64,000 nucleotides of DNA. Origin: Ylistrum balloti (Eukaryota). Below, in pieces: positions 623 through 33,900 of this stretch. Location of the stretch: positions 620,001 through 684,000 of the forward strand of contig NW_026782196.1 in the NCBI RefSeq assembly GCF_031769215.1. Direction: 5' to 3'. Every line of letters starts with the position of its first letter. Positions within the stretch are counted from its first letter, which is position 1. The notes under the pieces were generated by a model. The model was given only the letters and a program-made list of their open reading frames with translations. It was not told where the DNA came from and did no database searches. The position numbers were made by a program, and so were the translations under genes.

Positions 623-870
623 TTTTGTTACTACAAAATGACAAGAATGAGTTCCTGTAGAGACACTTACCCTCCTGAAGTTTGGAGTTGAGCAGATCTA
701 CATTTTGTTACTACAACATGACAAGATTGAGTTCCTGTAGAGACACTTACCCTCCTGAAGTTTGGAGTTGAGCAGATCTACATTTTGTTACTACAACATG
801 ATAAGATTGAGTTCCTGTAGAGACACTTACCCTCCTGAAGTTTGGAGTTGAGCAGATCTACATTTTGTTT
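623..870. repeat. 80-bp tandem triplication including the 3' half and donor of p190 exon 24
   Basis: near-identical copies at 631, 711 and 791. Confidence 0.95.
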
Positions 871-908
871 ATTGCCAGGTATACGGTAAATCCCTTCTGT
901 GTGCATTC
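831..908 (-). CDS. ARHGAP35: p190 exon 24 (RhoGAP arginine finger)
   Basis: acceptor cttacag|GA; [25 protein letters not shown]; donor G|gtaagt. Confidence 0.94.
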
Positions 909-3900
909 CTGTAAGATAAAAATATTAGTCAGGTTACCTCCCTTAGACATTCAATTAAAATCCATTTTCCTTTATGATGCAGGTCTACTGGACTAACAGT
1001 ACTCTTGATATCATCTGCTATTGTGATGTATGATGTTTACTTATGTAGAATCTAAGAAGACTAATTTGTAGAAGGTGTAAAAATTCAAGATTTCCTAAAA
1101 TGTCTTTTTTATACTATTCAAAAACTTTCTTACATTTCATTTTTAACATCTATCAATGGAATTTCTTCTTTCAAGAAATATTAAATAATATCTTTTGAAT
1201 GTATTCTTTCAAGAAATATTCTACTGAGAATTTGTTTACTGGCGAATGTACCATACTCTTCAAAACTATATATTGCATTTTCCCCCTCATCAGATTAGTT
1301 CAATCTAAAGCTATTTCATTTCACATTTCTGTCTATCCCAACTTCAGAATCTGGCTACCATTTGAAAATAAGCCTCTTTCTTCAGGAAATTATTTGTTGC
1401 TAAAAATAGAAACACATTAGAATGTCAAGCACCAATGAAATTTTGTTGCTTGGTGTTACATACTGATTACGTAGTCATGGATTTTCTTATGAGGTATATA
1501 AAAAGGTCATATTATATTAAGCAATAGTCATAATCTTGCTATTATTTAGAGTACTACAATTTCAGATTTAGTAGGTTTCACTGTAACAGCATCAATTATA
1601 GAAATGATTATACACTGTAGTTCACATTAAACAGTACAATTAATCATTACCCCAAAATATTTTAATGCCTGATGTTGTTCTACCATGATTACTTGAAACT
1701 TTGAAAGAAATTCATATCAAAACATTAAAATTAAATCAACTGTAGCAAAAGACATGATGAGAATGAATCACATATGATGAATCAACATAGGTACATGTGT
1801 AAAACATGAAATAATACTCCATTGTGAGATTTGCACACCATTTGGGGAGGGTTGTCATCCTTCAGAATCTGTTCAACCGATGTCATCGCATTATCATTAG
1901 GCAGGGAATAAATTAAAAGGAATTTCTAATACATGTGACAGAAAGAGAAATGTCTCTTTGCTTTCCTAGAAATTCTCACATTTTTCTTTCGGTCAAACAT
2001 TGATTAAAAAATTACAGGAAATTTTTTCTATAACAGCAGTTTCTGTAAATAGTATTTTTTGTTTTAGATTTTGCCACATTTTTTCTCCATGGAAACTTTT
2101 GATCAGATGACAGGAATGAAGAAAAGGTGTTCTCAGTTCTTGCAGGAATGTATATCTTAAGTATATTTGAATAGATAAAATGCAGTTAGGGAACAAATTA
2201 TCATGGTGATGAGGTCTGATACTGTTGTGACTAGCTACAGACCCACCATGCCCCTACAGCTGTCAGAAAAACATGCAGCTGTTTCACAACAGATTTCTTA
2301 TAAACAGCACTAAGAGTGTGATGTAGAAGAAGACGTGGTCATACAGAAGCTGTAATACCTAATGGTGATCTTTGCTGTTTGAACATATTATGAAGGATGA
2401 CAAATCCATTTCTAACATTATTATGAAGGATTTTTTCTTAAAATTTGATGTCAACTGTCAAAGATTTGTGTTTAAACACAGCAAATGATGTAAAATCCCA
2501 CCATCCACCTATAACATGGGAAAGGATAATATAACACAGCACACGAAACTCAAGGTCAGGAAGATGTTTGTATAATATCTTCATTAATAGTTATATGATT
2601 AAAACCTGAATCAAACATGATCATGTGAACAAACTTGCATTGTCAATCACAGTCACATGACATGTTAAAATAACCATATGATCATGTGACTAACTTACAT
2701 TGTCAGTCACATAAGTTCATTATAATGACATGTGGTAAGGTATGATCATGTGATCAAACTTTCACAGAGAGTCACATGGTGATGACATGTTATGAATATG
2801 GTCAGATGACCCATTTCCACACTGTGATGATGTAATATCATAACCTGGGCATGAAAATGCATTGTGATGCACAGCGGTAACATAAGCCACAAGGCCTTTG
2901 TTTTTGCTCACAGCAACACAAACAGTTTTACATGCATTAATTATAAGCTGCATGTTTAGAACTCAATAAAAAAACATTTCTAGTATCATATAGTACTTAC
3001 GACCAATTTTCACTGGAAATAAGGTAAGTATAGTTTTTAAAACGTGGATGAGATCATGATCAGCCAAAGGGAGATAATCGTAACATAGGCTGGCCTCTCT
3101 TGCTCTCTATCTTTTATATATACATCATAACAGGGCCAAGGGAGTCAAATGATTCACAGTATGAGAGTGAAAATTATCATGTATCCCTAAAAAAACAATT
3201 TGATTTTACAAGAACCATAACCTACATATTTCCTAGGAATGAGTGACTTATTTTTAGAAATAACACATATTCAAGGCCATCTATATCCTTTTTGACAAGT
3301 TATGCTACCAACATGGAAAATTCAAAAATATTCTCTAGTGTGATTACAAAATTAAGCATTATGATTTAATTTTCATCAACAATAAAAAGAACCCTTAAAG
3401 CTCATGTTAATTTGACAAGCTAGGACATTTACATGAATAATTCATTCAACTGATGCAAAATCTAGTGCACTAATAAAGTTTATGTTCTCAAAATGATGAT
3501 AATACTATCAAATAAAGGGAGAGAATAGTTTCAGAAAAAAACATCATGCTACAAGTTCACATGTGTCCTTTGTTCTTCCCCATAACCTTTCTAGGGAATA
3601 AACCTAGAGGAGTGGTAAGTAAGGGTAGGACGAGAGTTACCTTCAGCATCTATATATTCCACACAAGTCTCCACAAACTGTGGAAGGGAGGGGTTGGCGG
3701 AGGACATAGGGAATTCCTGCAGTCGACATCCACTCTCATTTCCTGCACCCCTACTGTCTTTCTTCTTCTTCTTTTGTATCTTCTGCTGTTCTTTTTGCTT
3801 CCTCTCCTAAAACAAATAAGTCAGAGGTTAAAAATTCATACAATAAGTCAGTGGTTAAAAATTCATACAGTAAGTCAGGGGTTAAAAATTCATACAATAA

Positions 3901-6900
3901 GTCAGAGGTTAAAAATTCATACAGTAAGTCAGAGGTTAAAAATTCATACAGTAAGTCAGAGGTTAAAAATTCATACAGTAAGTCAGAGGTTAAAAATTCA
4001 TAAACACAATGTATACAATAACTTTTACAAGAAATATACCACCAATCAAAAGATATTTCAAATGTAAGAAACAATTTACTTTTGTTTCTTTCTATGATAG
4101 TTTTCTTAGCTACAGAATACAAATCATTAGCTATTTTCACAATTATTCATCCACAAGGGTCGAAGGGCATGACATGTATTTTTTCAGGGTCTTGAATTAT
4201 GTACCTCCTCAGATTCCACCAATGAGTCAGCAGTTTTTGGTTTCTTCACTGTTGAATAGGGCATCACTTGTACTGAGGCACTACACCCCATAATGATAAT
4301 ATTTATGATCCTCACAGGATGAAACAGCAACAAAGTTTCCAGAATAGTTTACTATTTTATATCAAACATCCTCTAGCCATATCAGATATTAGCTAGTAGA
4401 CTTTATGTTTGTCATATCCAATGTCCAAACACATATGGAGGACTATGTTAATCATATGTCCTCCATAAACATGGTAGACTGATTGTGCTAGTCCATATAG
4501 TCAGTAAACATGAACCAAAAGATTAAGCTGGTCACATTTCGTCAGTGAACATGGACTGGTTGACTAAGAACATGGTTGACTATGCCTGCTGGGTTTCTCT
4601 TAAGTCACAAAGTATAATGCCCTGATCCTCACCTGGAGGATGAAAATATGGAAACGTCTTAATTCTGAATAAGTGTGTACTTAAATGACCATTACTACAA
4701 CATTCCTGTGAGCTCATTAGTAATCAGTAAGCAATTTGACTTCTATTGGACATTTAATTCTACAAACTGCAAGTATATAAACCATATTCAACTGATCATT
4801 AATGAATAATGATCAAATCCACATTTAAGCTTCTTTTAAAGAAACCCTTGTTCTTTATTCTGCCAAAGATTAATATTACCAGACCTTTAATTCTGAGCGC
4901 TATATAAATCTTTATCAAAATTCCTGTATCTTAACTCAAGCTAGGTAAAGACACTAAATCCCATTCAGTCAGCTACTACAAAGAACATTCTACCAACTAC
5001 CATCCTCTATCTAATTAGTACATATACTTAAACTGACTTCTGTTTTTTCAAATTTTTTTACCGGATCTAAAGCTCAAATCTCTGAACCATAAAATTTATC
5101 ATGGAGAAAATGGCCTACTATGATTAATTTTCAGCTTAGAATTTTGCAACACTCTACATGTAAAGCATTATGCACTTTAGAATTTAAGAGAGTTAAATAA
5201 ATACACTTCAAATTTTTATAATGTTATAAATTTACTGAGTACCTTGGACACTTCTAAGGTGAAATATCAAATGTCAACAATATGAATATATGTTCCTGCT
5301 TTTGTAATAACACTATGTAACATTTTGTTGATATCACAAAATGTTCTTGAAAAATAACATTAAAAATACCAAACAATTATCTAGGACATTCAGATTATTG
5401 CTTCCAAATAACTGCTACCAAAATATTATTACATGTACACAACTCGAATCTTAGTAAACTGATACAAAGACAGACCCATTAGAAATTATTTTACAGTTAT
5501 TGATGTTGGCCTCTCAGTTTCCTACAGATAAATAGAAAATAAAACCCCTTTAATCTTCTACAATGATATTCTGTAGGAAATATAGTTGTATATACACTAC
5601 CCGGTTAATCTCTCTTAATACCAGTGCTGACAAAAGCTCACAATATAACTAATTCTGTAGACAGATAAAAAAAAAAAAAAAACACTCCTGTCACAAACTC
5701 CCAATATATATATTGTTATAGTTTGGAATACAAGGTAAAGAAAAGAGCATTCAGTCTGTAACTTGTACACCATCTGATTTCTGTAGCCAGGTAGAAATTT
5801 GACCCTATTATGTAGAAGACATCAGGACATGGGATATCTCTATACTTCCTTCTTAATCAATAATCCTAATCTTTCTACAGTCTTTGTAACATAAATTTTA
5901 TCATAAAATGTTTCAATGAAAGCAACAGAATACTTTTCTGATCCTAAAAGATTCCATAATGAAGGTGGTTTACATACATAAAATACATACCACTACTGTC
6001 ACTGATGTACCACTGAATTCTGAACTAACATCAAATTCAAGATTTATTCTTTACATCTAAACCACTGCAGTAAAAGACTTCTTCACTACATAGTTCAAAC
6101 CACCAGTATCATTCCTGGCCTTCACATATATAGTAACCAGTTGAATCTATATGGACTCTTAATAGTAGTAACTGCATTTATAATTTTTCTAACTACAACC
6201 GGAAAATCCATGAAACATTCAATTTCGTCTTTGAACAATTTCAGAAATTTGATAAGCTCGTGGTCTGCATTAGCAAATATTTGAAAGAAACTAAATTTTA
6301 AGATGTTTTGAATACTTTTCACAGTCTAGCCCCTACAGTTTTTTATCTGCAACAAACTTCCTTCTTGGTGCTTAAGCAATTCATAATACTAAATTCTTTA
6401 TCTGTCAGTGAATCAATAAACACGAGTAATAAATTACAGTCTGATATTTACACCTGGACATCAAAGAATACATCTGGGTACATGATGAAAGCTTTGTAAA
6501 TAAACGGTAAGTACAATTCCATGTATATCAATAAGTTTACGACTTTTGAGAACTCCACCCGATTTGATCACCAATTTCGTAGAACGAACAAATAATTGAT
6601 AAGAAACCATCAACATTTACATCCTTAAAGTTTTCTATTCACAGGTCCATACTCCCATGATATACAACACACCTCCTTTTAAGGAATAAGCTTTGAAAGC
6701 TTTCATCACCATTCAAGTTCATCATACTGTAAAAAGTACTGACACCATCAACTGTACTGTAAGGTATTCTAAAACATTGACCAATACACTGCATATCACA
6801 GCCACATGTCAGTATAGTCACACCAACAAATTCTGGGTCTGGCAGTCAGACTTCCTCAAATCACTAAAAAATACAGTCTCTATATATAGATATACATAAA

Positions 6901-9900
6901 TATCCAGTCATATACCGGTAATCTAATAACATTGACAATCACTGCAATCATTTATATATAAAATCAAAAACAGTAAAGACACTTCTTTATCTTCATAAAT
7001 TAAACTCTACATTTCTGATGAAGCAGAGATAATCCTGATGGTTAATCCTGATGGCTAATCCTGACAGTCTGTTAGGGAATTTCCATAATGTACACACTAT
7101 ATACACTGAATACTAGCAGACGACACCCGAGCATAAAGCTTAAGGTGTTCACAAAGTCAATCGACTATATACCTATGTGTACAAGCTGCCTGTTGAACTG
7201 GATTGTTCATGGTTGCCATAGGTGACAAGTAAACAAATCCAGTTTCCAGATCCTTAACACACTGAAAGTTACTGATAAAGATTCAAAAGTTCAAAGGCAA
7301 TTTATTCTAAAGTTTAACAGAATAAAGATATATATATAATTTATAAAAATAGTGAAGACTAAAGAGGTTGTAGTCATTAGGATGAGACCAGAGGTGGGCC
7401 TATATTGATTATACACTACACTGGACATATCTATTATATATATACTACCTGCTTATGCTAATGAGGAGTAAACTACGTTCTGGGCACAGGTACACAATGT
7501 ATTGTCATTTATTTACAATGTAGCAGGTAATCCTATTGTCCTTTGTAGAGGTCATATACCTATATATCAATTATATACATGACTGGTGATAAAATGTCAG
7601 CCAGATCTTTGATAAATTTCTTACATAAATACAGCTTGCAACTTCACTCTGTAATGTAAATCTTTAATCATTGTATTGACTGGTTTGAATTCAACCACTC
7701 TATGTACCTACACAATGATAATCTCATATCACCTAAACATTAATCTAATAAATAATTCACAACACCCATTTAAATCAATTAGAATATTAAAGTCTCTAAC
7801 TCATCCAGCAGAAATGTACACTTCAGCCAATTTTAAAAAAAATGCTAGTCTTTATAAAACAGTGAATTTTTAACCAGAAATTCTGAAGGTCACCTAAAAC
7901 ATAAGATATTCAATCATTCAATGTTTCTTTTATTCAATCTCGATAGTAGATGTCAGGTGAATTCTTCAAATTTTATTTCCAAACCATTGACCGTAAATCA
8001 GCATCAATGGNNNNNNNNNNNNNNNNNNNNNNNNNNNNNNNNNNNNNNNNNNNNNNNNNNNNNNNNNNNNNNNNNNNNNNNNNNNNNNNNNNNNNNNNNN
8101 NNNNNNNNNNNNNNNNNNNNNNNNNNNNNNNNNNNNNNNNNNNNNNNNNNNNNNNNNNNNNNNNNNNNNNNNNNNNNNNNNNNNNNNNNNNNNNNNNNNN
8201 NNNNNNNNATATACAGCTAGTGTCCTAATTATATATTCATACTCTGGCACCAGAAACAATGGCTAGTGATGCACGGTCATTATATATGGTATCCATTCAG
8301 CAATTTCCTGAGATAGATCAAATCATACCTTAAAGTAGACACACAATTTTAACAAGAAATGGAAACCTGCTTTATCATCCAATCAAGTCCAAATCACATT
8401 TATATCATTTGATGAAAATAATATTAGACCAATACTGAACCCTGATTATAGATTTTCATAACAATTCAAGCAATATATGGCTTTAGTTGTCAGCTGAAAT
8501 AGTGAAAGTGAGAATTCAATTAAATCCTGAGAAAGCTTGACTTGTGATTTGCCTACACAGGACTCTTAATATTGGAGGATTAGGAACGTTGGTAAATCCT
8601 TCCATAACAATCAAGAAATACTGGTAACAATTGTTGTCAAGAAGTCAACAATTTAATTTGAGGATGATGGTGGTGATATAGGCTCTAATCATTCAATAAA
8701 ATTTGATACAGGTAATCCCAAAGGATCACCACTGTACCATCATTATTTTTTCTTTATAAGTTGGGTACTTTTCGTCTTTCCTCTTATTTTCTCTTTAATT
8801 ATATGAAATTTGAAAATACCAAAATCTAAGATGGATGCTACAATGAAAGGAACCAGAGGGACATTCATAGAAAGTCGGGGAATATTCTTGCATTACTGAA
8901 GAAATAGTGAAAACAACCTTCAACTGCTTTTTTTCCCCTCTCATATCTGTCCCATCATCAAAAGATCACTATTAAGGATCAAGAAGTACCTTCACATGAA
9001 ATTTGAGAAATATCTCAAGAGCAATAATAAGCTCTCATTATCAAAATCTAAGATGGCCTGCTGTTAGCCATGTTACAACAGTACTACTAAGAATAGAAGA
9101 GAACCTTTGTATGAAAGTTGGGAAAGATCTGTGCTTTTCAAGAAATAATCATTAAAGGAATCTGACAATAAATGAACATGGGGCAATTTGAATAACCATC
9201 TAAGGGGCTATCATGTAGAAATGATCAGAAAAGGTAGATGGAGCTAAACAGATCTTGGCTCTCATCATAATTTGATCTTTATTGGTTCTTTTAAAGTTCT
9301 TTTCCCTTCTTTTCTCTCCTTTGCTCTGTTTTTGCTCTTAATTTTACAAAATTTGTAAACTCCTTTTAATAGCTTTAATTATCTTGGTCTGCCAAATCAA
9401 AGATGGTCACCTGTCAAACAATTTGTTTTTCAAATCAGTCTATATATCAAATAGCCACCTTGAATATTCAAATCAGGCCAAAATGTAGTATGCACTTTCC
9501 TGTATCTGAAATCTGAGAACAATCAATCACATGTTTTTTTCAGAAACAGCAATAACAAACTAGGACTGTTAAAAGCCAAGATGGTCGCCTGGTGGCTATC
9601 TTTTTTTCTCAATCAGTCCCAAATTGAACTAAGCACAACTAAGAACGACGACATTCAGTGATTCTCTGGAATAGCAATAGCAAGAATTGTTGAAGGACAG
9701 ATGGACAATGGACGATGCGATGGACGATTGACAGACAAGGGGCAATTTGATTAGCCATCATCTGTTAATGGTGGGCTCAGAATTACAATACACGTATTTG
9801 CAATTCATGAAAAATCCACCAATTTTCTTTCCAAAATAGGGCAAATATGTCTCATCACAAACAAGTGATAAAAACACTACTGCAAATTATACTGTGCAGT

Positions 9901-12900
9901 AAATAGTATGATCTAAGTGTGATTTATTTGTGATTTATTTCCTGTTACTGGTTGTTATGTCAGAAAAAATCAATGACACAAAAGGGGTCCCATTTTCAGC
10001 AATAACCAAATAACAATTGCTCAACTAGAATTCATACATACATGATAAATATGAAAATGATGAGTATCCTTTGTCAAATTCAATAGGAAAACATTCTAAT
10101 ATGAAATTGGAAATTGTCTGTAGAAAAGACAGAAAACAGTATAACTCGCATCTGCCTTTATCCTTAAATAAGATATTGGAAATTGTCCGTAGAAAAGACA
10201 GAAAGCAGTATAACTCACCTCCTCCTTCTTCCTTCTCTTTTCATCCTCCTTTATCTTCTGTTGTTCCTTGCGTTGTTTCTTGGAAGTTTTCATCTTGGAG
10301 GCCCAGTTACCACTATCATTGAGGTCAAGGTCGGCACTGTCCATACTTGTTGCCATCAAACCACCAAAGCGATCCTGTGATAAAAACTTTAAATTATTAT
10401 AATTCTATCCATCTTACGTGTTCCAAGTCAATATGTTTACACAGGAGAAAAGTGTAATATATTAATACAACAGGCCCATGGGCCTTAACGGTCATCGGTC
10501 ATAAAATACAAGATTTCAAATTTTGAACTTGAGAAGAAGTCGAAAATGTGTTTTCAAGGTGGCGGCCATGTTGGATTTCGGACCATCCTGAAATTAATAA
10601 ACTTTGGTCAGGATCATATCACGATCATTTCAGGTAAGTTTCAGCTCAATGAGACATGTAGAACTTGAGAAGAAGTTGAAAATGTTTACGACGGATGACA
10701 GATAGTGCCGGATAAAAGGCAATTGCATTAAGTCATCAGGCCCTTCGGTCAGATGACCTAAAAACATTGAGAAGCTCAAATTTGTCCCATTAATCCTGAG
10801 TACACTGTTACTGTAAACTTTGTTTTACAAACAAAGAGTTTGAATTCTATTTGATTATGTTCTATTTCAACTAGAACAATTTTATCTTCATGTGCCATTT
10901 AATGTAACAAGATGATGAAATGTTACAATTCTCATTTTAAAATGAGCTTCCCACTCCCAGTCTTTTGATATATACTTTCATAAAAGAATTCTTTAGTGAG
11001 ATTTTACAATATCATACTTCTCCAAACCAAATCCCTATTCAACTCCTGTTATATTTTTGCCTACAAACACATTGCTGAAGTACTATAACAGGTGATCTAC
11101 AACTATAACAAGAGGCCCATGGGCCGTAACGGTCATCTGACATAAAATACAAGATTTCAAATTTTGAACTTGAGATGAAGTCGAAAATGTGGTTTCAAGA
11201 AGGCGGCCATGTTGGATTTCGGACCAACCCGAAATTAACAACTTTGGTCAGGATCATGTCACGATCATTTCAGGTAAGTTTCAACTCAATGAGATGTGTA
11301 GAACTTGAGAAGAAGTTGAAAATGTTTATGACGGTCAGATGACCTAAAAATATAAACAACCCACAAACTTAAACTTTAATACAAGGAGGCTGCACATTTA
11401 TGCAAATAAACTAGTTTGTCAGTTCTTTCAATGTAATGTCTCAAACAGAAATTGGAATGGATCTGCAGATATTAATACACCCCTTCATACTTAGTCAAAG
11501 TTTGTCAGAAAACACTAAGAAAGATAAATAGTTCTGTCCTTATTTCATAGTGAACATCCCAGGTCCAGAGATACTGATTTGAAACTGGACAGGATAACAC
11601 AAGACAATATGGAACAGGACAGCTAGAGAAGAGGACACAACAGAGAGATGGGTAATAATTCTGAGTGACTATCATACTGAAGACCATGGTGTAAAATCCA
11701 AGATCTACTTACCCGAGGCAAGGTTGCAAACTCCCTCTCTCCATATACTATGTCCCTGTAATGGCCTACAACAGATGTCTGTCTTTTAGCAAAATGTTAT
11801 CAAAAATGAAGAGAGTCAACTCATCGTAATTGATCCATTAACACAATTTTTATAAAACTTTAGGAGTAAATTATGTTTTAAAGCTTTATTTTTGCCTACA
11901 TATTTGAACCAAATTTTACTCACACAATTTTAATTTACAAAAACTTCACATAAGCCTACTAAAGTGACAAGAGTTTTACATACTAGGAGGTGAGCCAGCC
12001 AGGTTGTCACTGTCTGACAGCTGAGGACTAAAGGCTTGCCCACTACTCTCACTACCACCTGGTGGCCGACGCTTTTTAATTTTGGGTGGTTTCTTCTCCT
12101 TGCGAACTAATTGCAGCTCATCTCCCGTGCCCTCACTTCCATCAGAAGGGGAATTACTCCGTTCTACAAAGGCACGACACGCAATTTACAATAAATAATC
12201 CAATCACTACTGTATATTTCAGGATCTGTACATAGTATTTTGTTTACCTTTAAAAACTTACAACTTATAAGACTAGAGAAAAATTCTTCAATGATTCTGA
12301 TGTTCCAGTATTGTAAAATGATATATTTTCATGGGGCTCAAGTTTCATGTATTTTTTTCTATAAACTCCCTATTTCATTGACATTTTATTTTGTTGATGA
12401 ACATCCATGAAATAAATATGAATTTCTGGTTAAGGAGTACCCAAGAATCAGCCAAAGTAAATCCAAAAACAAGATGCTACATCCTTCTCATAATGGACAA
12501 AGACAGAAAACCCTTACATGTGGATAACAAATTAGTGACTGACCTCGATCACGGTCACGTATTCTCAAGTGACGGAACTGACTGGCCAGATCAGAGTTCA
12601 TTGGATCTCCACGGACAGCCTGGGGTTTGGACTTGGTCTTTTTCTTGTGTGGAGTTGGTTTCCTGTTACACTTTGTGTACAGACTCTTTTCTCGCTCACG
12701 CTCCAGTGAACTGAACTCAGAATCTTCCGAATCTGTATTGCCTTCTGTTTAATAAACCAATCAATAATTTTTGTGAAAAATTATTTTGAATAGGTTTGCA
12801 TTGTATAACATTTCTGTTAGTTAAAAACCCTTCAAACTATGGTAGCCTTCTTAAAGGGTCTATCCATCATTACTTCAGTGCATTATTATCAATTAGGAGA

Positions 12901-15900: not shown

Positions 15901-18900
15901 GTCTAGACACAAAATTTTACTGTTTATGATCAATCCTGTGTTTAACATCACTGTCTCATCATGTGTCTAGCCCCAAAATTTTACTGTTTATGATAACACT
16001 GTGTTTAACATCACTGTCTTATCATGTGACTAGACCCAAACTTTTATTGTTTATGATAAATTCTATGTATATTGTCAATGTATGTATATAATCATCATGT
16101 GTTGTTACATTAACCCAGAAGTAACAGGTACCCCAACATTAACAGGTACCCCAACATTAACAAGTACCCTAACATTAACATATACCCTAACATTAACAGA
16201 TACCCTTATGTTAACAGGTACCCTAACATTAAATGTACCCTAACATTAACAGGTACCCCAACATTAACAGGTACCCCAACATTAACAGATACCCTTATGT
16301 TAACAGGTACCCTAACCTTAACAGGTACCATAACATTAACAGGTACCCCAACATTAACAGATACCGTAACATTAACAGATACCCCAACATTAACAGGTAC
16401 CCCAACATTAACAGGTACCCCAACATTAACAGATACCGTAACATTAACAGGTACCCCAACATTAACAGATACCGTAACATTAACAGATATCCTAACATTA
16501 AAGGTACCCCAACATTAACAGGTACCACAACATTAACAGATACCCTAACATAAACAGGTACCCCAACATTAACAGATACCCTTATGTTAACAGGTACCCT
16601 AACATTTAATGTACCCTAACATTAACAGGTACCCCAACATTAACAGGTACCCCAACATTAACAGATACCGTAACATTAACAGATACCCCAACATTAACAG
16701 GTACCCCAACATTAACAGGTACCCCAACATTAACAGATACCGTAACATTAACAGGTACCCCAACATTAACAGATACCGTAACATTAACAGATATCCTAAC
16801 ATTAAAGGTACCCCAACATTAACAGGTACCACAACATTAACAGATACCCTAACATAAACAGGTACCCCAACATTAACAGATACCCTTATGTTAACAGGTA
16901 CCCTAACATTTAATGTACCCTAACATTAACAGGTACCCCAACATTAACAGGTACCCCAACATTAACAGATACCGTAACATTAACAGATACCCCAACATTA
17001 ACAGGTACCCCAACATTAACAGGTACCCCAACATTAACAGATACCGTAACATTAACAGGTACCCCAACATTAACAGATACCGTAACATTAACAGATATCC
17101 TAACATTAAAGGTACCCCAACATTAACAGGTACCGCAACATTAACAGATACCCTAACATAAACAGGTACCCCAACATTAACAGATACCCTAACATAAACA
17201 GGTACCCCAACATAAACAGGTACCCCAACATTAACAGGTACCCTAACATTAACAGGTACCATAACATTAACAGGTACCCTAACATTAACAGGCATCCTAA
17301 CATTAACAGGTACCCTAACCTTAACAGGTACCATAACATTAACAGGTACCCTAACATTAACAGGTACCCTAACCTTAACAGATTCCCTAACATTAACAGG
17401 TACCATAACATTAACAGGTACCCTAACATTAACAGATACTCTGAAAAGTTAATAGACAGCTGCTGATATCTATTACACAGATTCATAAAAATCATTTTCT
17501 TGAATTTGCTTTTATTTACTGGTACTCAAATTTTGGAAATTTGACAGCATATTTTTAATACTGATAGAATTGCAAAAAATTGTTCAGCCCTATAATTGGT
17601 TAAGTTTCTATTTCTCTTCTTTTTCAAAACAATTTTCAGAAGCCTCTGTAAGAAAATGTTACATACAAGAAAGCAGTATACAAATATTTTTATGCTGTTA
17701 AAATTCATATACAGTAAAGACAAGATATCATCACTGAAATCTGAAAACACTCTGTGGACATAGATGATACCAGTATATTCTGAACAGCAGCCTATATTAG
17801 AAAGGAGAACTCTCTTTTCCCCCTCTCATACATAAATCTTTACATGCCACATAAAATTCACATAATTTATTAACACAATTAATGATATGATGATATATAG
17901 TGGATAAATGAGAGGCAAAGTTAGAAATCACACAACAGAAGAATGAACCTGATCTTATAAAAGATCTTTATGCAAATAAAAAATAATGGAAATGGCTTGA
18001 TGAAGAAACTGGTAAAGAGATCCATGATGCTACAGACTTAAAGAGGTATGACTCAGTTGAAAATGGTATAGGTTAAGGTCGTGGATGTACTGACTACAAT
18101 TTGTGATTGGTGTATCCTATTCATCAAGAACTAGGACAAAAAGGTAGCAAGTGTATGACAAGATATATCATAGGTGTGATTAAATCATTGAAGACATATT
18201 CATCATAAGTACATACAGGTTAAAAGGTCAAAAACTCACAACAATGTCATAGAAACAGACATCTTAAAGAGTTATCAAATGATTGTATAATGGAAAGGTC
18301 ATAATTAATGGGTAGAAAGGTCACATGATTATATAATGAAAAAGTCACAGGATTATTTATAAAGGAGAATACATTTCTATTATGAAAAAGTAAAACATAT
18401 GAAGGACATGACAAGAATAGACAGAAACACTGTAGACAAGGTAGACAGAAAAGGGACAAAGTGTTGATACATTTTAGTGTCTGTGTAAGATCACTGTATA
18501 TGGTGCAGAGTTAAAAACATCAAGGACACGACAGATGTGTCAAGTGTAGGACGATGGTTAAAAAGAAACTGTAAACAACAAAGCAAATTTGCACCTATTA
18601 ATTCAGAAAAGTCAACAGTAGTACAATGAATTATACATATTACATACCATATGCTGCAAGAGAATTTGTTATGTTAGGCATGCACTTGTCTGGTACATCA
18701 TCACTAACCACATTCCAATGCACAGAGGATTAACATCATTTCTAACGGCATGGAGTTCATGTTTTCTTACATAAAATTTTGAATTTTTTTTCATTTCATT
18801 CCTTCTAATAAAATCTCCATAGATAAATCAAACTCAACTTGTACCCCTTCCCCTACAACCCCATCAAAAAGATATGTCAGAAAGTTTTTGTGTTGCAATG

Positions 18901-30900: not shown

Positions 30901-33900
30901 GATAAAATTGACCTCACCTGAAAATGCGTCCCTCAAAGATATTTTGTAATTTTACTTCTGCACATGTATGTTGGAAGTAGCACCTGTCTCGTGATGGACA
31001 CTCCATAAACCCTAGCAGATTAAGGAGGATTGCCGTCCTTTCCTCGTTCAGGCGATCCATCACACGATATCTAGAGTGTACAATAGGATTCTGATGATTG
31101 CATGTATCAATTCTACTTACAGAAAGTAATTGGGAGCAAGTAAAATGATATATTTTAACATAAAACAGTGAAGTCGTGTCACCACTAAAGTCTGTGATCA
31201 AGCTTACAGGGGTCTGTTAAATGAAAAGCTAAGTATTTCTTCCTAATCTAACAGTAATAACAAAGTCTGAATTAATTTACTTCTGTTAAGTTTGAACGAC
31301 TATTGTAAAATGAAACCTCCATTTAAGCCCTGTACTTACTCCCATTCCAAGCTGCTAATTTGATCATGAAAGGTAAGCTTGTCGTAGGGTGTTTGAAGGT
31401 AAGCTTGTCATAGGATGTTTGAAGGCAAGCTTGTTGTAGGGTGTTTGAGGCTGAGAAGTCTCATAATTTTCACAATTTTACTTCAATTAGGAAAGTAAAT
31501 TGCACACTAAGGCTTACAGTAGGATCATCACACTAATTTCAGGTCACCACATTGCCCTGCAGTCACCAGGCCAACATTAAGATCACCACCTTGATCTTTG
31601 GTAAACCACTGGCCTAAGGTTATTGATAAAGATACTGTAGTTATAAATGTAAGCCTTATTGATCCAGCCACTAGTATTCTGGTTTTCACAACAAAAACAA
31701 GGTATTTTCAATAAAATTTTCTTTCCTATTCCAATACGTATAGATATCAATAAGCTTGTTGCTCAAAAATCTGAGTATTCATACATGTATCAATAATGCA
31801 TTGCACTGTCATCTCACAATCTGGACGCTAATAGCTGCGGTTGAAGGTGGCAGGATTACAGACATTTGATTATGTTGTTCTATAAACTAAGACGTCTTTA
31901 ACACTTACCGAGGGTCATCCTCTATATACTTGGTAATGGTACGGATGTCTTCCTGTGTGATCGTATTAGGTGTATTCGACATGTGAATGAATATCTCCAG
32001 CTTCTCCCAAAGCAGTTCCTGAAAATCCTGACGGGCAGCGGTTTTAAGGTCATGCTGGTGTGCATCATACACCTGTTCACGTTCATACGGTTTGAGATCA
32101 ATGTAACAGTCTCTGCCCAAAAATGAAAGGTATGTCTCTTCCAATGACTTTCCAGGCGACACTTCTGGAGTCTCCTCCAATAATTTTTTAAACTGTCTCT
32201 TCAACCTTTAGCAAAAATAGCATGAGATTTTACTGACAATAAGTTCATTCAATATGATTACAATATAATGAACTGCAAAGGAGAGGATGTTTAGATATAG
32301 GAATGAAGCTTCTGATGAATGTAATAATAATCAGCCAGGAAACAGCAGTATTGGCAATGGTCTGATGAAAATGAGAATTTTAAACAATCTTTTTAAATCA
32401 GAAATTTGCCATATTTACAACAAAAAAAAGTACTATGAAACCCAAATCAATGCTGATTTTACATAAATTCTCAACTGCCTAATTAATATCATATACAACA
32501 TAAAATAATTGTTTTTCTTAGTTAATTTTTTGGAACTAATATATTATGTAGATGTGTTCCTTGTCCAAGACACTACACCACATTCACAGTACATACTGAA
32601 GTTTCCTGTGTACATACTGAAGTTTCCTGTGTTGGGCTTGCAGGGCGTTGAAATGATTGCGGAAGCACGTCTCAGCATCACAGGAGGACAGGAGATCAAA
32701 TGGGATGCGTGTCTCCTGATAGTTATCAACAAAATGAGGAGTCGTTTTCCAACTGTCATTCTCATAGCATACCTCCACAAAATACTCTTCAAAATCTGGG
32801 TGTTGTCGGATCATCCGTTGACAGGAAGTCCAACTGAAATATGATATCAATTCTCAACAAATTAAGTATTGTAAGAACACATATTTAGGGTATTATGTAA
32901 TGGAATCATATTTCTTACCATACAGCAGTGAGACAAATTCAAGGAAAAATATTCAGCACTTTCTATTTATCTTCCATTTACAAATTATCTCTTGATACAA
33001 TTTGCAGGAGTGAGCTTATTGTACAATAGTATATTGAAAAAGTCTTTGATGGATTGTTGACCCAAACACTTGGCTGCTTGTCCCTAACACCTGACTGCTT
33101 GTCCCTAACACTTGATTGCTTGCCCCTAACACTTGGCTGCTTGCCCCCAAAACTTGACTGCTTGCCCCTAACACTTGACTGCTTGCCCCCAACACTTGGC
33201 TGCTTGCCCCCAACACTTAACTGCTTGCCCCGAACACTTGACTGCTTGCCCCTAACACTTGACTGCTTGCCCCTAACACCTGACTGCTTGTCCTTGACAC
33301 CTGACTGCCTGCCCCTAATACTTGGCTGCTTGTCCCTCACGCTTGACTGCTTGCCCCAAACACTTGACCTCTAGTCCCTAACATTTGGCTACTTGCCACG
33401 AACACTTGACTGCTTGCCCTTAACATTTGAATGAATGCCTCTTACTCTTGACTGTTTGTCCTAACACTTGACTTCCAGCCCCCCTACACTTGACTTCTTG
33501 TCCCAAACCTTTGTCTGGAACATACATCTATGACCCAAAGACATTTAACTGATGCCCCTGAACCCTGTTATTTGTCAGGCTAGAACCTCTGACCTTTCCG
33601 TGATGGTGTTGAGGTCTGGGAGGAAGTGCTGGAGGACATCAGGTAATTGTTGGAGATAGTGACTCTCTCGTCTGCGTATTTGATCATCACACAGGTGTTT
33701 AATATGTAGTCTGAACAGTTTACGTGCAGATTCAGTTCCAAAATGCTCAATATAATGTAAAAAGTCTGATTCCTTTTCTAACTTCTTGCGTGACGGTGCC
33801 CATACAGCCTTTGGGTCACCAATGTTGTTGCGAAGCAGGCTACAATAGGCCTCTGTTGCCACATCTAGTAATTCCTTCCGCTGTCGAACAGCTTCGGAGA

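Follow-up and report, generated by a model that had tools for sequence, protein, structure and literature searches.

The p190 RhoGAPs (the vertebrate ARHGAP35/p190A and ARHGAP5/p190B and the Drosophila protein RhoGAPp190) are among the main proteins by which animal cells switch Rho off, and research on them centres on the N-terminal and middle modules that direct and restrain the GTPase-activating protein (GAP) domain. In the chimaerins, a short RacGAP form (alpha1- as opposed to alpha2-chimaerin) arises from an internal promoter and is recruited to membranes via a C1 domain. Dually acylated N-termini of the SH4 type are found in Src-family kinases (Lck, Fyn) and in G-alpha i/o (MGCTLS...). 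Here we analyse 64,000 nucleotides (nt) of the scallop Ylistrum balloti (contig NW_026782196.1, positions 620,001 to 684,000; this whole stretch is called the window below), the minus strand of which carries a p190 RhoGAP gene. We think it likely, from the comparison of eight mollusc species, that a short open reading frame (ORF) in intron 22 of this gene, at 4291-4205, is a genuine and ancient alternative first coding exon that gives a short GAP-only product.

The predicted product shares the polybasic stretch and a complete GAP domain with the p190 family, but it is without the N-terminal and middle modules and has a Met-Gly-Cys N-terminus instead. With the SH4-type N-termini the exon peptide shares Met-Gly-Cys, small residues, Ser or Thr at position 6 and basic residues further on, as far as a motif can be read from sequence, whereas there is no homology outside the motif and the attached domain is a RhoGAP rather than a kinase or a G-alpha. 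The likeness to alpha1-chimaerin lies in an internal start that yields a GAP protein without the regulatory module that the long form has at its N-terminus. However, the GAP family is a different one, the anchor would be an acyl group rather than a C1 domain, and the sequences are unrelated.

The closest relatives are three computed models from the mussel Mytilus edulis. When the last 234 residues of the Pecten maximus protein were used as query, XP_071152188 (296 residues) was found with its cluster mates XP_071152189 and XP_071152190 (283 and 282 residues), named 'rho GTPase-activating protein 5-like isoform X1-X3'. They have the same build as the predicted scallop product, starting with MGCTASVHVMPYST... 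(MGCTAS) and running from the Met-Gly-Cys exon through the equivalent of exon 23 to the normal C-terminus, but the mussel exon is longer (45 codons) and the scaffold on which they were computed holds only the 3' part of the gene. A preliminary description, made from the letters of the window, had stated that no such p190 isoform was known. This holds for the literature searched, in which we found no description of a lipidated or GAP-only p190, but not for RefSeq, which contains these three computed models. What is new is the conserved start exon of the short form, which is part of none of the scallop products retrieved; the p190 family and the computed mussel model were already known.

The candidate exon in intron 22

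Profile and word-indexed searches with the host gene returned mollusc p190 proteins. The exons of the window are 92% identical over 1536 aligned residues to Pecten maximus XP_033752621 (P0159) and 91% identical to the Mizuhopecten protein, and the large ones among them code for the GTPase-like domain at the N-terminus and for the FF region. The orthologues have the full p190 architecture, namely a Ras-like GTPase domain, RhoGAP-FF1, a fourth FF domain, the pseudoGTPase pG1, a polybasic stretch and a C-terminal RhoGAP domain (precomputed Pfam set PF00071, PF16512, PF23083, PF19518 and PF00620). The gene extends past base 1 of the window, the boundary falling within the RhoGAP domain. The annotated Y. 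balloti locus (L004, XP_060072351) matches the window at 100% identity to either side of the run of N at 8011-8208 and was not counted as an independent witness.

Intron 22 was put at 6.4 kb in the preliminary description and measures 6412 nt, from the phase-0 end of exon 22 at 10219 to the start of exon 23 at 3806. Within it, the minus strand from 4291 reads atcattATGGGGTGTAGTGCCTCA..., a 29-codon ORF with the N-terminus Met-Gly-Cys-Ser-Ala-Ser. The ATG (4291-4289) lies in the strong Kozak context atcattATGG, with A at -3 and G at +4, and an in-frame TAA is found 20 codons upstream, with 19 sense codons in between. The frame ends in phase 0 at the donor GAG/GTACAT (last exon base 4205, GT at 4204-4203), 398 nt before the acceptor of exon 23. 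The preliminary description had given the start, its Kozak context, the upstream stop, the donor and the 398-nt distance, and all its sequence statements are borne out, as is its remark that the other ATG-GG starts close early: seven Met-Gly starts occur in the intron, and only ATG 4291 opens a long frame, the other six closing after 4-16 codons.

The minus strand of intron 22 contains 146 ATGs. From 61 of them the frame runs to a phase-0 GT without meeting a stop, and in 12 of these cases it is at least 20 codons long. By a rough estimate, the expected number of MGCxxS starts in an intron of such size is about 0.03, and many introns had been scanned. Judged from the window alone, the ORF is not beyond chance, and its significance therefore rests on conservation between species. 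An origin of the exon from a repeat or transposon was considered and rejected, its sequence being single-copy in the window and no dispersed repeat.

Conservation and coding constraint

Conservation of the peptide in other molluscs had been named beforehand as a test of the proposal. A search of the counterpart intron of Pecten maximus (13.3 kb, L001 31823-45128) with the 29-residue peptide gave one match, at L001 44788-44874, 255 nt before exon 23, with 27 of the 29 residues identical (E 2e-15). In the DNA alignment, window positions 4351-4179 form an island of 78% identity within an otherwise nearly unalignable intron. The Argopecten irradians counterpart, MGCSASVHVMPYSTIKKPRTADSMVETEE at L003 30744-30830, retains 24 of the 29 residues, and counterparts were found in the same intron of further species as well (Table 1).

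Between Y. balloti and P. maximus, 17 of the 87 bases of the exon differ, 14 of them at third codon positions; 12 codons have changed synonymously, and one serine codon has switched from TCA to AGT. Counted at the first, second and third codon positions, the differences are 2, 1 and 14 for this pair, 4, 2 and 15 for Y. balloti and A. irradians, and 2, 1 and 8 for P. maximus and A. irradians. The constitutive exon 22, taken for comparison, has the same pattern (2, 2 and 15). Variable columns across the three scallops are distributed as 4, 2 and 16 (binomial, 1.8e-4). Pairwise ratios of nonsynonymous to synonymous divergence (dN/dS) are 0.048, 0.056 and 0.068, and the proportion of synonymous differences (pS) is 0.65-0.71 in the two pairs with Y. 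balloti, which is near saturation, and 0.44 between P. maximus and A. irradians. When the differences were placed at random, none of 100,000 placements of the 17 Y. balloti-P. maximus differences preserved the peptide equally well without a stop (p<1e-5); the same was true of the 21 differences between Y. balloti and A. irradians (0 of 100,000), and for P. maximus and A. irradians 51 of 100,000 did as well as observed. Taken together, the third-position bias, the low dN/dS and the simulation mean that the exon, on this comparative evidence, evolves as a translated frame under purifying selection.

Five further mollusc species have counterparts on the same strand and in syntenic position, in the terminal 0.2-1.7 kb of the intron that precedes the GAP-domain exon. 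The exon peptide of Mytilus coruscus begins in the same way as that of M. edulis, and that of Mercenaria mercenaria begins MGCGVSNNVPCATVK... and belongs to the sole Met-Gly-Cys ORF on that strand in 86 kb. All eight species (seven bivalves and one gastropod) have retained the ATG and Gly2. No frame other than that of the ATG is open in any of them. An in-frame stop precedes the ATG by 3-19 codons, and the similarity ends in every case at a GT in phase 0, this donor being kept even as exon length ranges from 87 to 135 nt; a purine occupies -3 in seven of the eight. Conservation of the peptide is highest over its first 14 residues (12 of 14 identical between M. edulis and scallop), as would be expected of an N-terminal targeting signal.

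Coding constraint, start codon, donor phase and the age of the exon are shown by this comparison. Since the exon is shared by bivalves and a gastropod, its presence in both places it before their split, though the homology of the Mercenaria and Lottia counterparts, judged by position, motif and splice phase, is less certain than that of the counterparts in pteriomorph bivalves. The proposal that the intron hides a coding start exon, internal to the gene and spliced in frame to exon 23, is thus supported by conservation in eight species, by a dN/dS of about 0.05 and by the M. edulis models.

Table 1. Coordinates of the features discussed; plain numbers are positions in the window, and labels beginning with L denote the loci retrieved from other species.
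Feature	Position	Strand	Description
Putative 5' untranslated region (5'UTR) or internal promoter	4292..4765	minus	Non-coding blocks conserved among scallops at -57..-33, -363..-327 and -474..-458 from the ATG
Candidate alternative first coding exon	4205..4291	minus	ATG and 28 codons, phase-0 end; basis: sequence, syntenic orthologues in 7 other species, dN/dS, simulation
Splice donor GTACATA	4198..4204	minus	Follows GAG; identical in three scallops; GTGAGC, GTAAGC, GTATGT or GTAAAT in other species
Intron between candidate exon and exon 23	3807..4204	minus	398 nt; contains a 27-nt x 6.9 tandem repeat at 3817-4002; unconserved
Exon 22 of the full-length transcript	10219..10371	minus	Ends in phase 0 at GAGGAG/GTGAGT; absent from the predicted short form
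Exon 23	3641..3806	minus	166 nt; phase-0 acceptor ttttag/GAGAGG; polybasic stretch (including QKKKKKD) and start of the RhoGAP domain
Exon 24	831..908	minus	Arginine-finger motif GIYRIPGN of the RhoGAP domain
Mytilus edulis counterpart	L002 6820		MGCTASVHVMPYSTIQVPKSAS..., 45 codons, donor GTGAGC
Mytilus coruscus counterpart	L006 59876		Within the full-length gene, 9.7 kb past exon 22 and 1.5 kb before exon 23
Pinctada imbricata counterpart	L005 33639		Basis: syntenic place, same strand
Mercenaria mercenaria counterpart	L008 71945		MGCGVSNNVPCATVKTVPYERLKRPVNDLNDDDDWRPK/GTAAAT
Lottia gigantea counterpart	L007 21864		MGASATVCSETNIKPCICNRSDSQESLITTDG/GTAAAT; peptide starts MGASATVC...

The predicted product and its N-terminus

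The predicted scallop product has about 263 residues, 29 from the candidate exon and 234 from exon 23 onward. It keeps the polybasic stretch and the arginine finger, and in the Pfam comparison positions 1-146 of the 148 in the RhoGAP profile were matched (P0277; P0159:1394-1627), which amounts to the whole domain. The exons for the GTPase-like, FF and pG1/pG2 (pseudoGTPase) modules lie upstream of 10219. Because of the in-frame stop before the ATG, none of these modules can be read into the short product, which as predicted is an isoform of a p190 gene and not a canonical p190 protein. A protein in which a lipid-motif N-terminus is followed directly by a polybasic patch and a RhoGAP domain, and from which the other p190 modules (GTPase, FF and pseudoGTPase) are absent, is what the preliminary description had envisaged, and the comparison between species speaks in its favour.

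The N-myristoyltransferase pattern (PROSITE PS00008) reads G-{EDRKHPFYW}-x(2)-[STAGCN]-{P} after the initiator Met. The sequences GCSASV, GCTASV, GCTASI, GCGVSN and GASATV, which occur across the eight species, all fit it, with Gly2, a permitted residue 3, Ser or Thr at position 6 and a residue other than Pro at position 7 in every case. Cys3 is present in all seven bivalve sequences, and the bivalve N-terminus fits the SH4-type pattern of myristoylation plus palmitoylation. From this motif we infer that the short form would be myristoylated and palmitoylated and targeted to membranes.

Molluscs very probably make, to judge by these comparisons, a short p190 RhoGAP with little beyond the catalytic domain, and this form probably carries a fatty-acid anchor. 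In the mechanism we propose, transcription would start inside intron 22, most likely at a promoter just upstream of the exon, translation would begin at ATG 4291, and the exon would be spliced in phase 0 to exon 23. Removal of Met1 would allow Gly2 to be myristoylated and, in bivalves, Cys3 would be palmitoylated. The lipid anchor and the polybasic patch would then hold a RhoGAP domain free of its regulators on membranes. For the wider proposal, that a separately started, dually acylated and membrane-tethered 'GAP-only' p190 has been kept in molluscs since before the bivalve-gastropod split as a signalling protein in its own right, silencing Rho or Rac at particular membranes, possibly cilia, outside the control that the regulatory modules exert on full-length p190, we see about even chances. 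Targeting of the short form to cilia or through UNC119 is speculation, and a GAP-only p190 may be found more widely in Lophotrochozoa.

If true, this would be a second, differently targeted use of the same catalytic domain, with a lipid anchor and a polybasic patch in place of the regulatory modules. Furthermore, as this case illustrates, codon-periodic conservation is enough by itself to bring out short conserved first exons in long introns.

Annotations, transcripts and rival explanations

Three independent annotations count the exon as coding. Besides the set XP_071152188/89/90 these are the M. edulis model CAG2207619.1, which starts at the same Met-Gly-Cys exon, and the Pinctada model FSP39_003567, in which the exon is internal. 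A tandem repeat is present in the same short intron of M. edulis too, and CAG2207619.1 reads through it. In Pinctada imbricata a fragment of a mariner-like transposase (...IEYPPYSPDLAPSDF..., L005 31748-31927) is spliced into the p190 coding sequence of the model just upstream of the Met-Gly-Cys exon. This fragment is probably a prediction artefact, and the model is unreliable because of it.

Several observations weigh against the exon being used as proposed. All the short M. edulis models come from one 25.7-kb scaffold, from which the upstream exons are missing; the models may consequently be ab initio completions of a 5' end rather than RNA-supported, and do not prove transcription. A length-limited protein search gave no short product from P. 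maximus, A. irradians, Y. balloti or the main M. edulis locus. Among transcript-derived (Logan) contigs, neither the C-terminal 234 residues of the Pecten protein nor an alignment of the spliced Mytilus and Pinctada N-termini found a protein starting with MGC; every hit of the two queries was a genomic read-through ORF, a canonical exon 22-23 fragment or one of the Mytilus models. The one run examined at the locus (on 2100-8000) has an even depth of about 10 over introns and exons, with scattered single-base differences and no joints, and thus behaves as low-depth DNA. The region upstream of the ATG has no CpG island and, as read from the alignment, no TATA conserved among the three scallops, and the scallop donor GTACAT deviates from the usual A at +4 and G at +5. 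Lottia has Ala3 in place of Cys3, with a Cys at position 8, and at the locus of the brachiopod Lingula, where the exon structure differs, no counterpart was seen. Short Logan members of oyster clusters were also considered as candidates for the short form and rejected, as they turned out to be ORFs of exon 2.

Where the transcript of the short form would begin is best judged from the sequence upstream of the ATG. Among scallops, the conserved non-coding blocks are confined almost entirely to the roughly 480 nt of the intron that precede it; no conservation of these blocks was found across orders. A pyrimidine-rich tract ending in AG 19 nt before the ATG is seen in two of the three scallops, the AG being lost in Argopecten, and no splice acceptor upstream of the ATG is conserved in all three. 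In view of the blocks and of an AG that Argopecten has not kept, a local promoter just upstream of the exon would be the simplest reading; the position of this promoter, like transcription of the short form itself, is inferred. It is possible, though unlikely, that the exon codes for and starts the protein without being the first exon, with a non-coding exon upstream or a 5' end elsewhere and no promoter adjoining 4291. Such an arrangement would suit the failure to find a promoter signature and could make use of the tract and its AG. However, it is at odds with the loss of this AG in Argopecten, and the clustering of the conserved blocks so close to the ATG fits a local promoter or 5'UTR better. 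The AG can be read in another way too, since entry at this site from exon 22 would lead to a TAG stop after nine codons. Together with the one Pinctada model that includes the exon internally, this would be in line with a conserved exon that the full-length transcript takes in as a cassette or 'poison' exon, truncating p190 before the GAP domain, or else with a non-coding regulatory element. We regard either as highly improbable, because the three-base periodicity in the ATG frame and the nearly saturated synonymous sites of the two Y. balloti pairs indicate a translated frame rather than an element conserved at the nucleotide level. Moreover, ATG and Gly2 are invariant, the acceptor is unconserved, and the Pinctada model with its transposase fragment carries little weight.

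A translated frame could also belong to an independent micropeptide of about 35 residues, made without splicing to exon 23, and the ORF of the window does continue for 6 codons beyond the donor to a TGA. Yet conservation ends exactly at the GT: the 87 nt downstream of the donor have an ungapped identity of 41%, and the read-through tails are unlike between species, whereas a consensus-like phase-0 donor is found in all eight despite the variation in exon length. The micropeptide is hence an extremely improbable explanation. As for a chance ORF in an AT-rich intron, it could be entertained as long as only the window was considered, given how many intronic ATGs reach an in-phase GT. Its probability is negligible now that orthologues under strong purifying selection are known from seven other species, and the comparative data exclude it. 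The reading of 4291-4205 as an alternative first coding exon of the scallop p190 gene is the one we retain.

The locus is also rich in repeats and duplications. The 27-nt repeat between the candidate exon and exon 23 ends 10 nt short of the exon 23 acceptor, and each unit contains branch-point-like CTGAC and TTAAC. A duplicated 69-nt unit (85% identity) at 10098-10234 begins just past the exon 22 donor, and positions 8850-9640, in intron 22, resemble a satellite of about 155 nt that is present in about 11 copies in the counterpart intron of P. maximus (L001 41750-43460). Other introns of the gene hold long arrays of short tandem repeats (16200-17500 and 32980-33370), which translate into periodic ORFs of the PNINRY-like and GKQSSVR-like kinds. 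In P. maximus, the exon for residues 531-583 exists in two copies about 2 kb apart (L001 10448-10606 and 12502-12660), with 100% protein identity, representing a local duplication or an assembly artefact. Near the boundary of the window, at 623-869, an 80-nt unit is repeated 3.1 times with 98% identity. The unit takes in the 3'-terminal part of exon 24 together with the GT donor, so that three equivalent donors stand in tandem; a real duplication is possible, as is an effect of the assembly. Finally, a 12-nt microexon candidate, TGAAAATTGGTC, lies between exons 23 and 24 at 3001-3012 on the minus strand and matches the RefSeq protein of P. maximus, which reads DAEVKIGRMHTEG at the exon 23/24 junction, so that at least one annotated scallop product makes use of the microexon.

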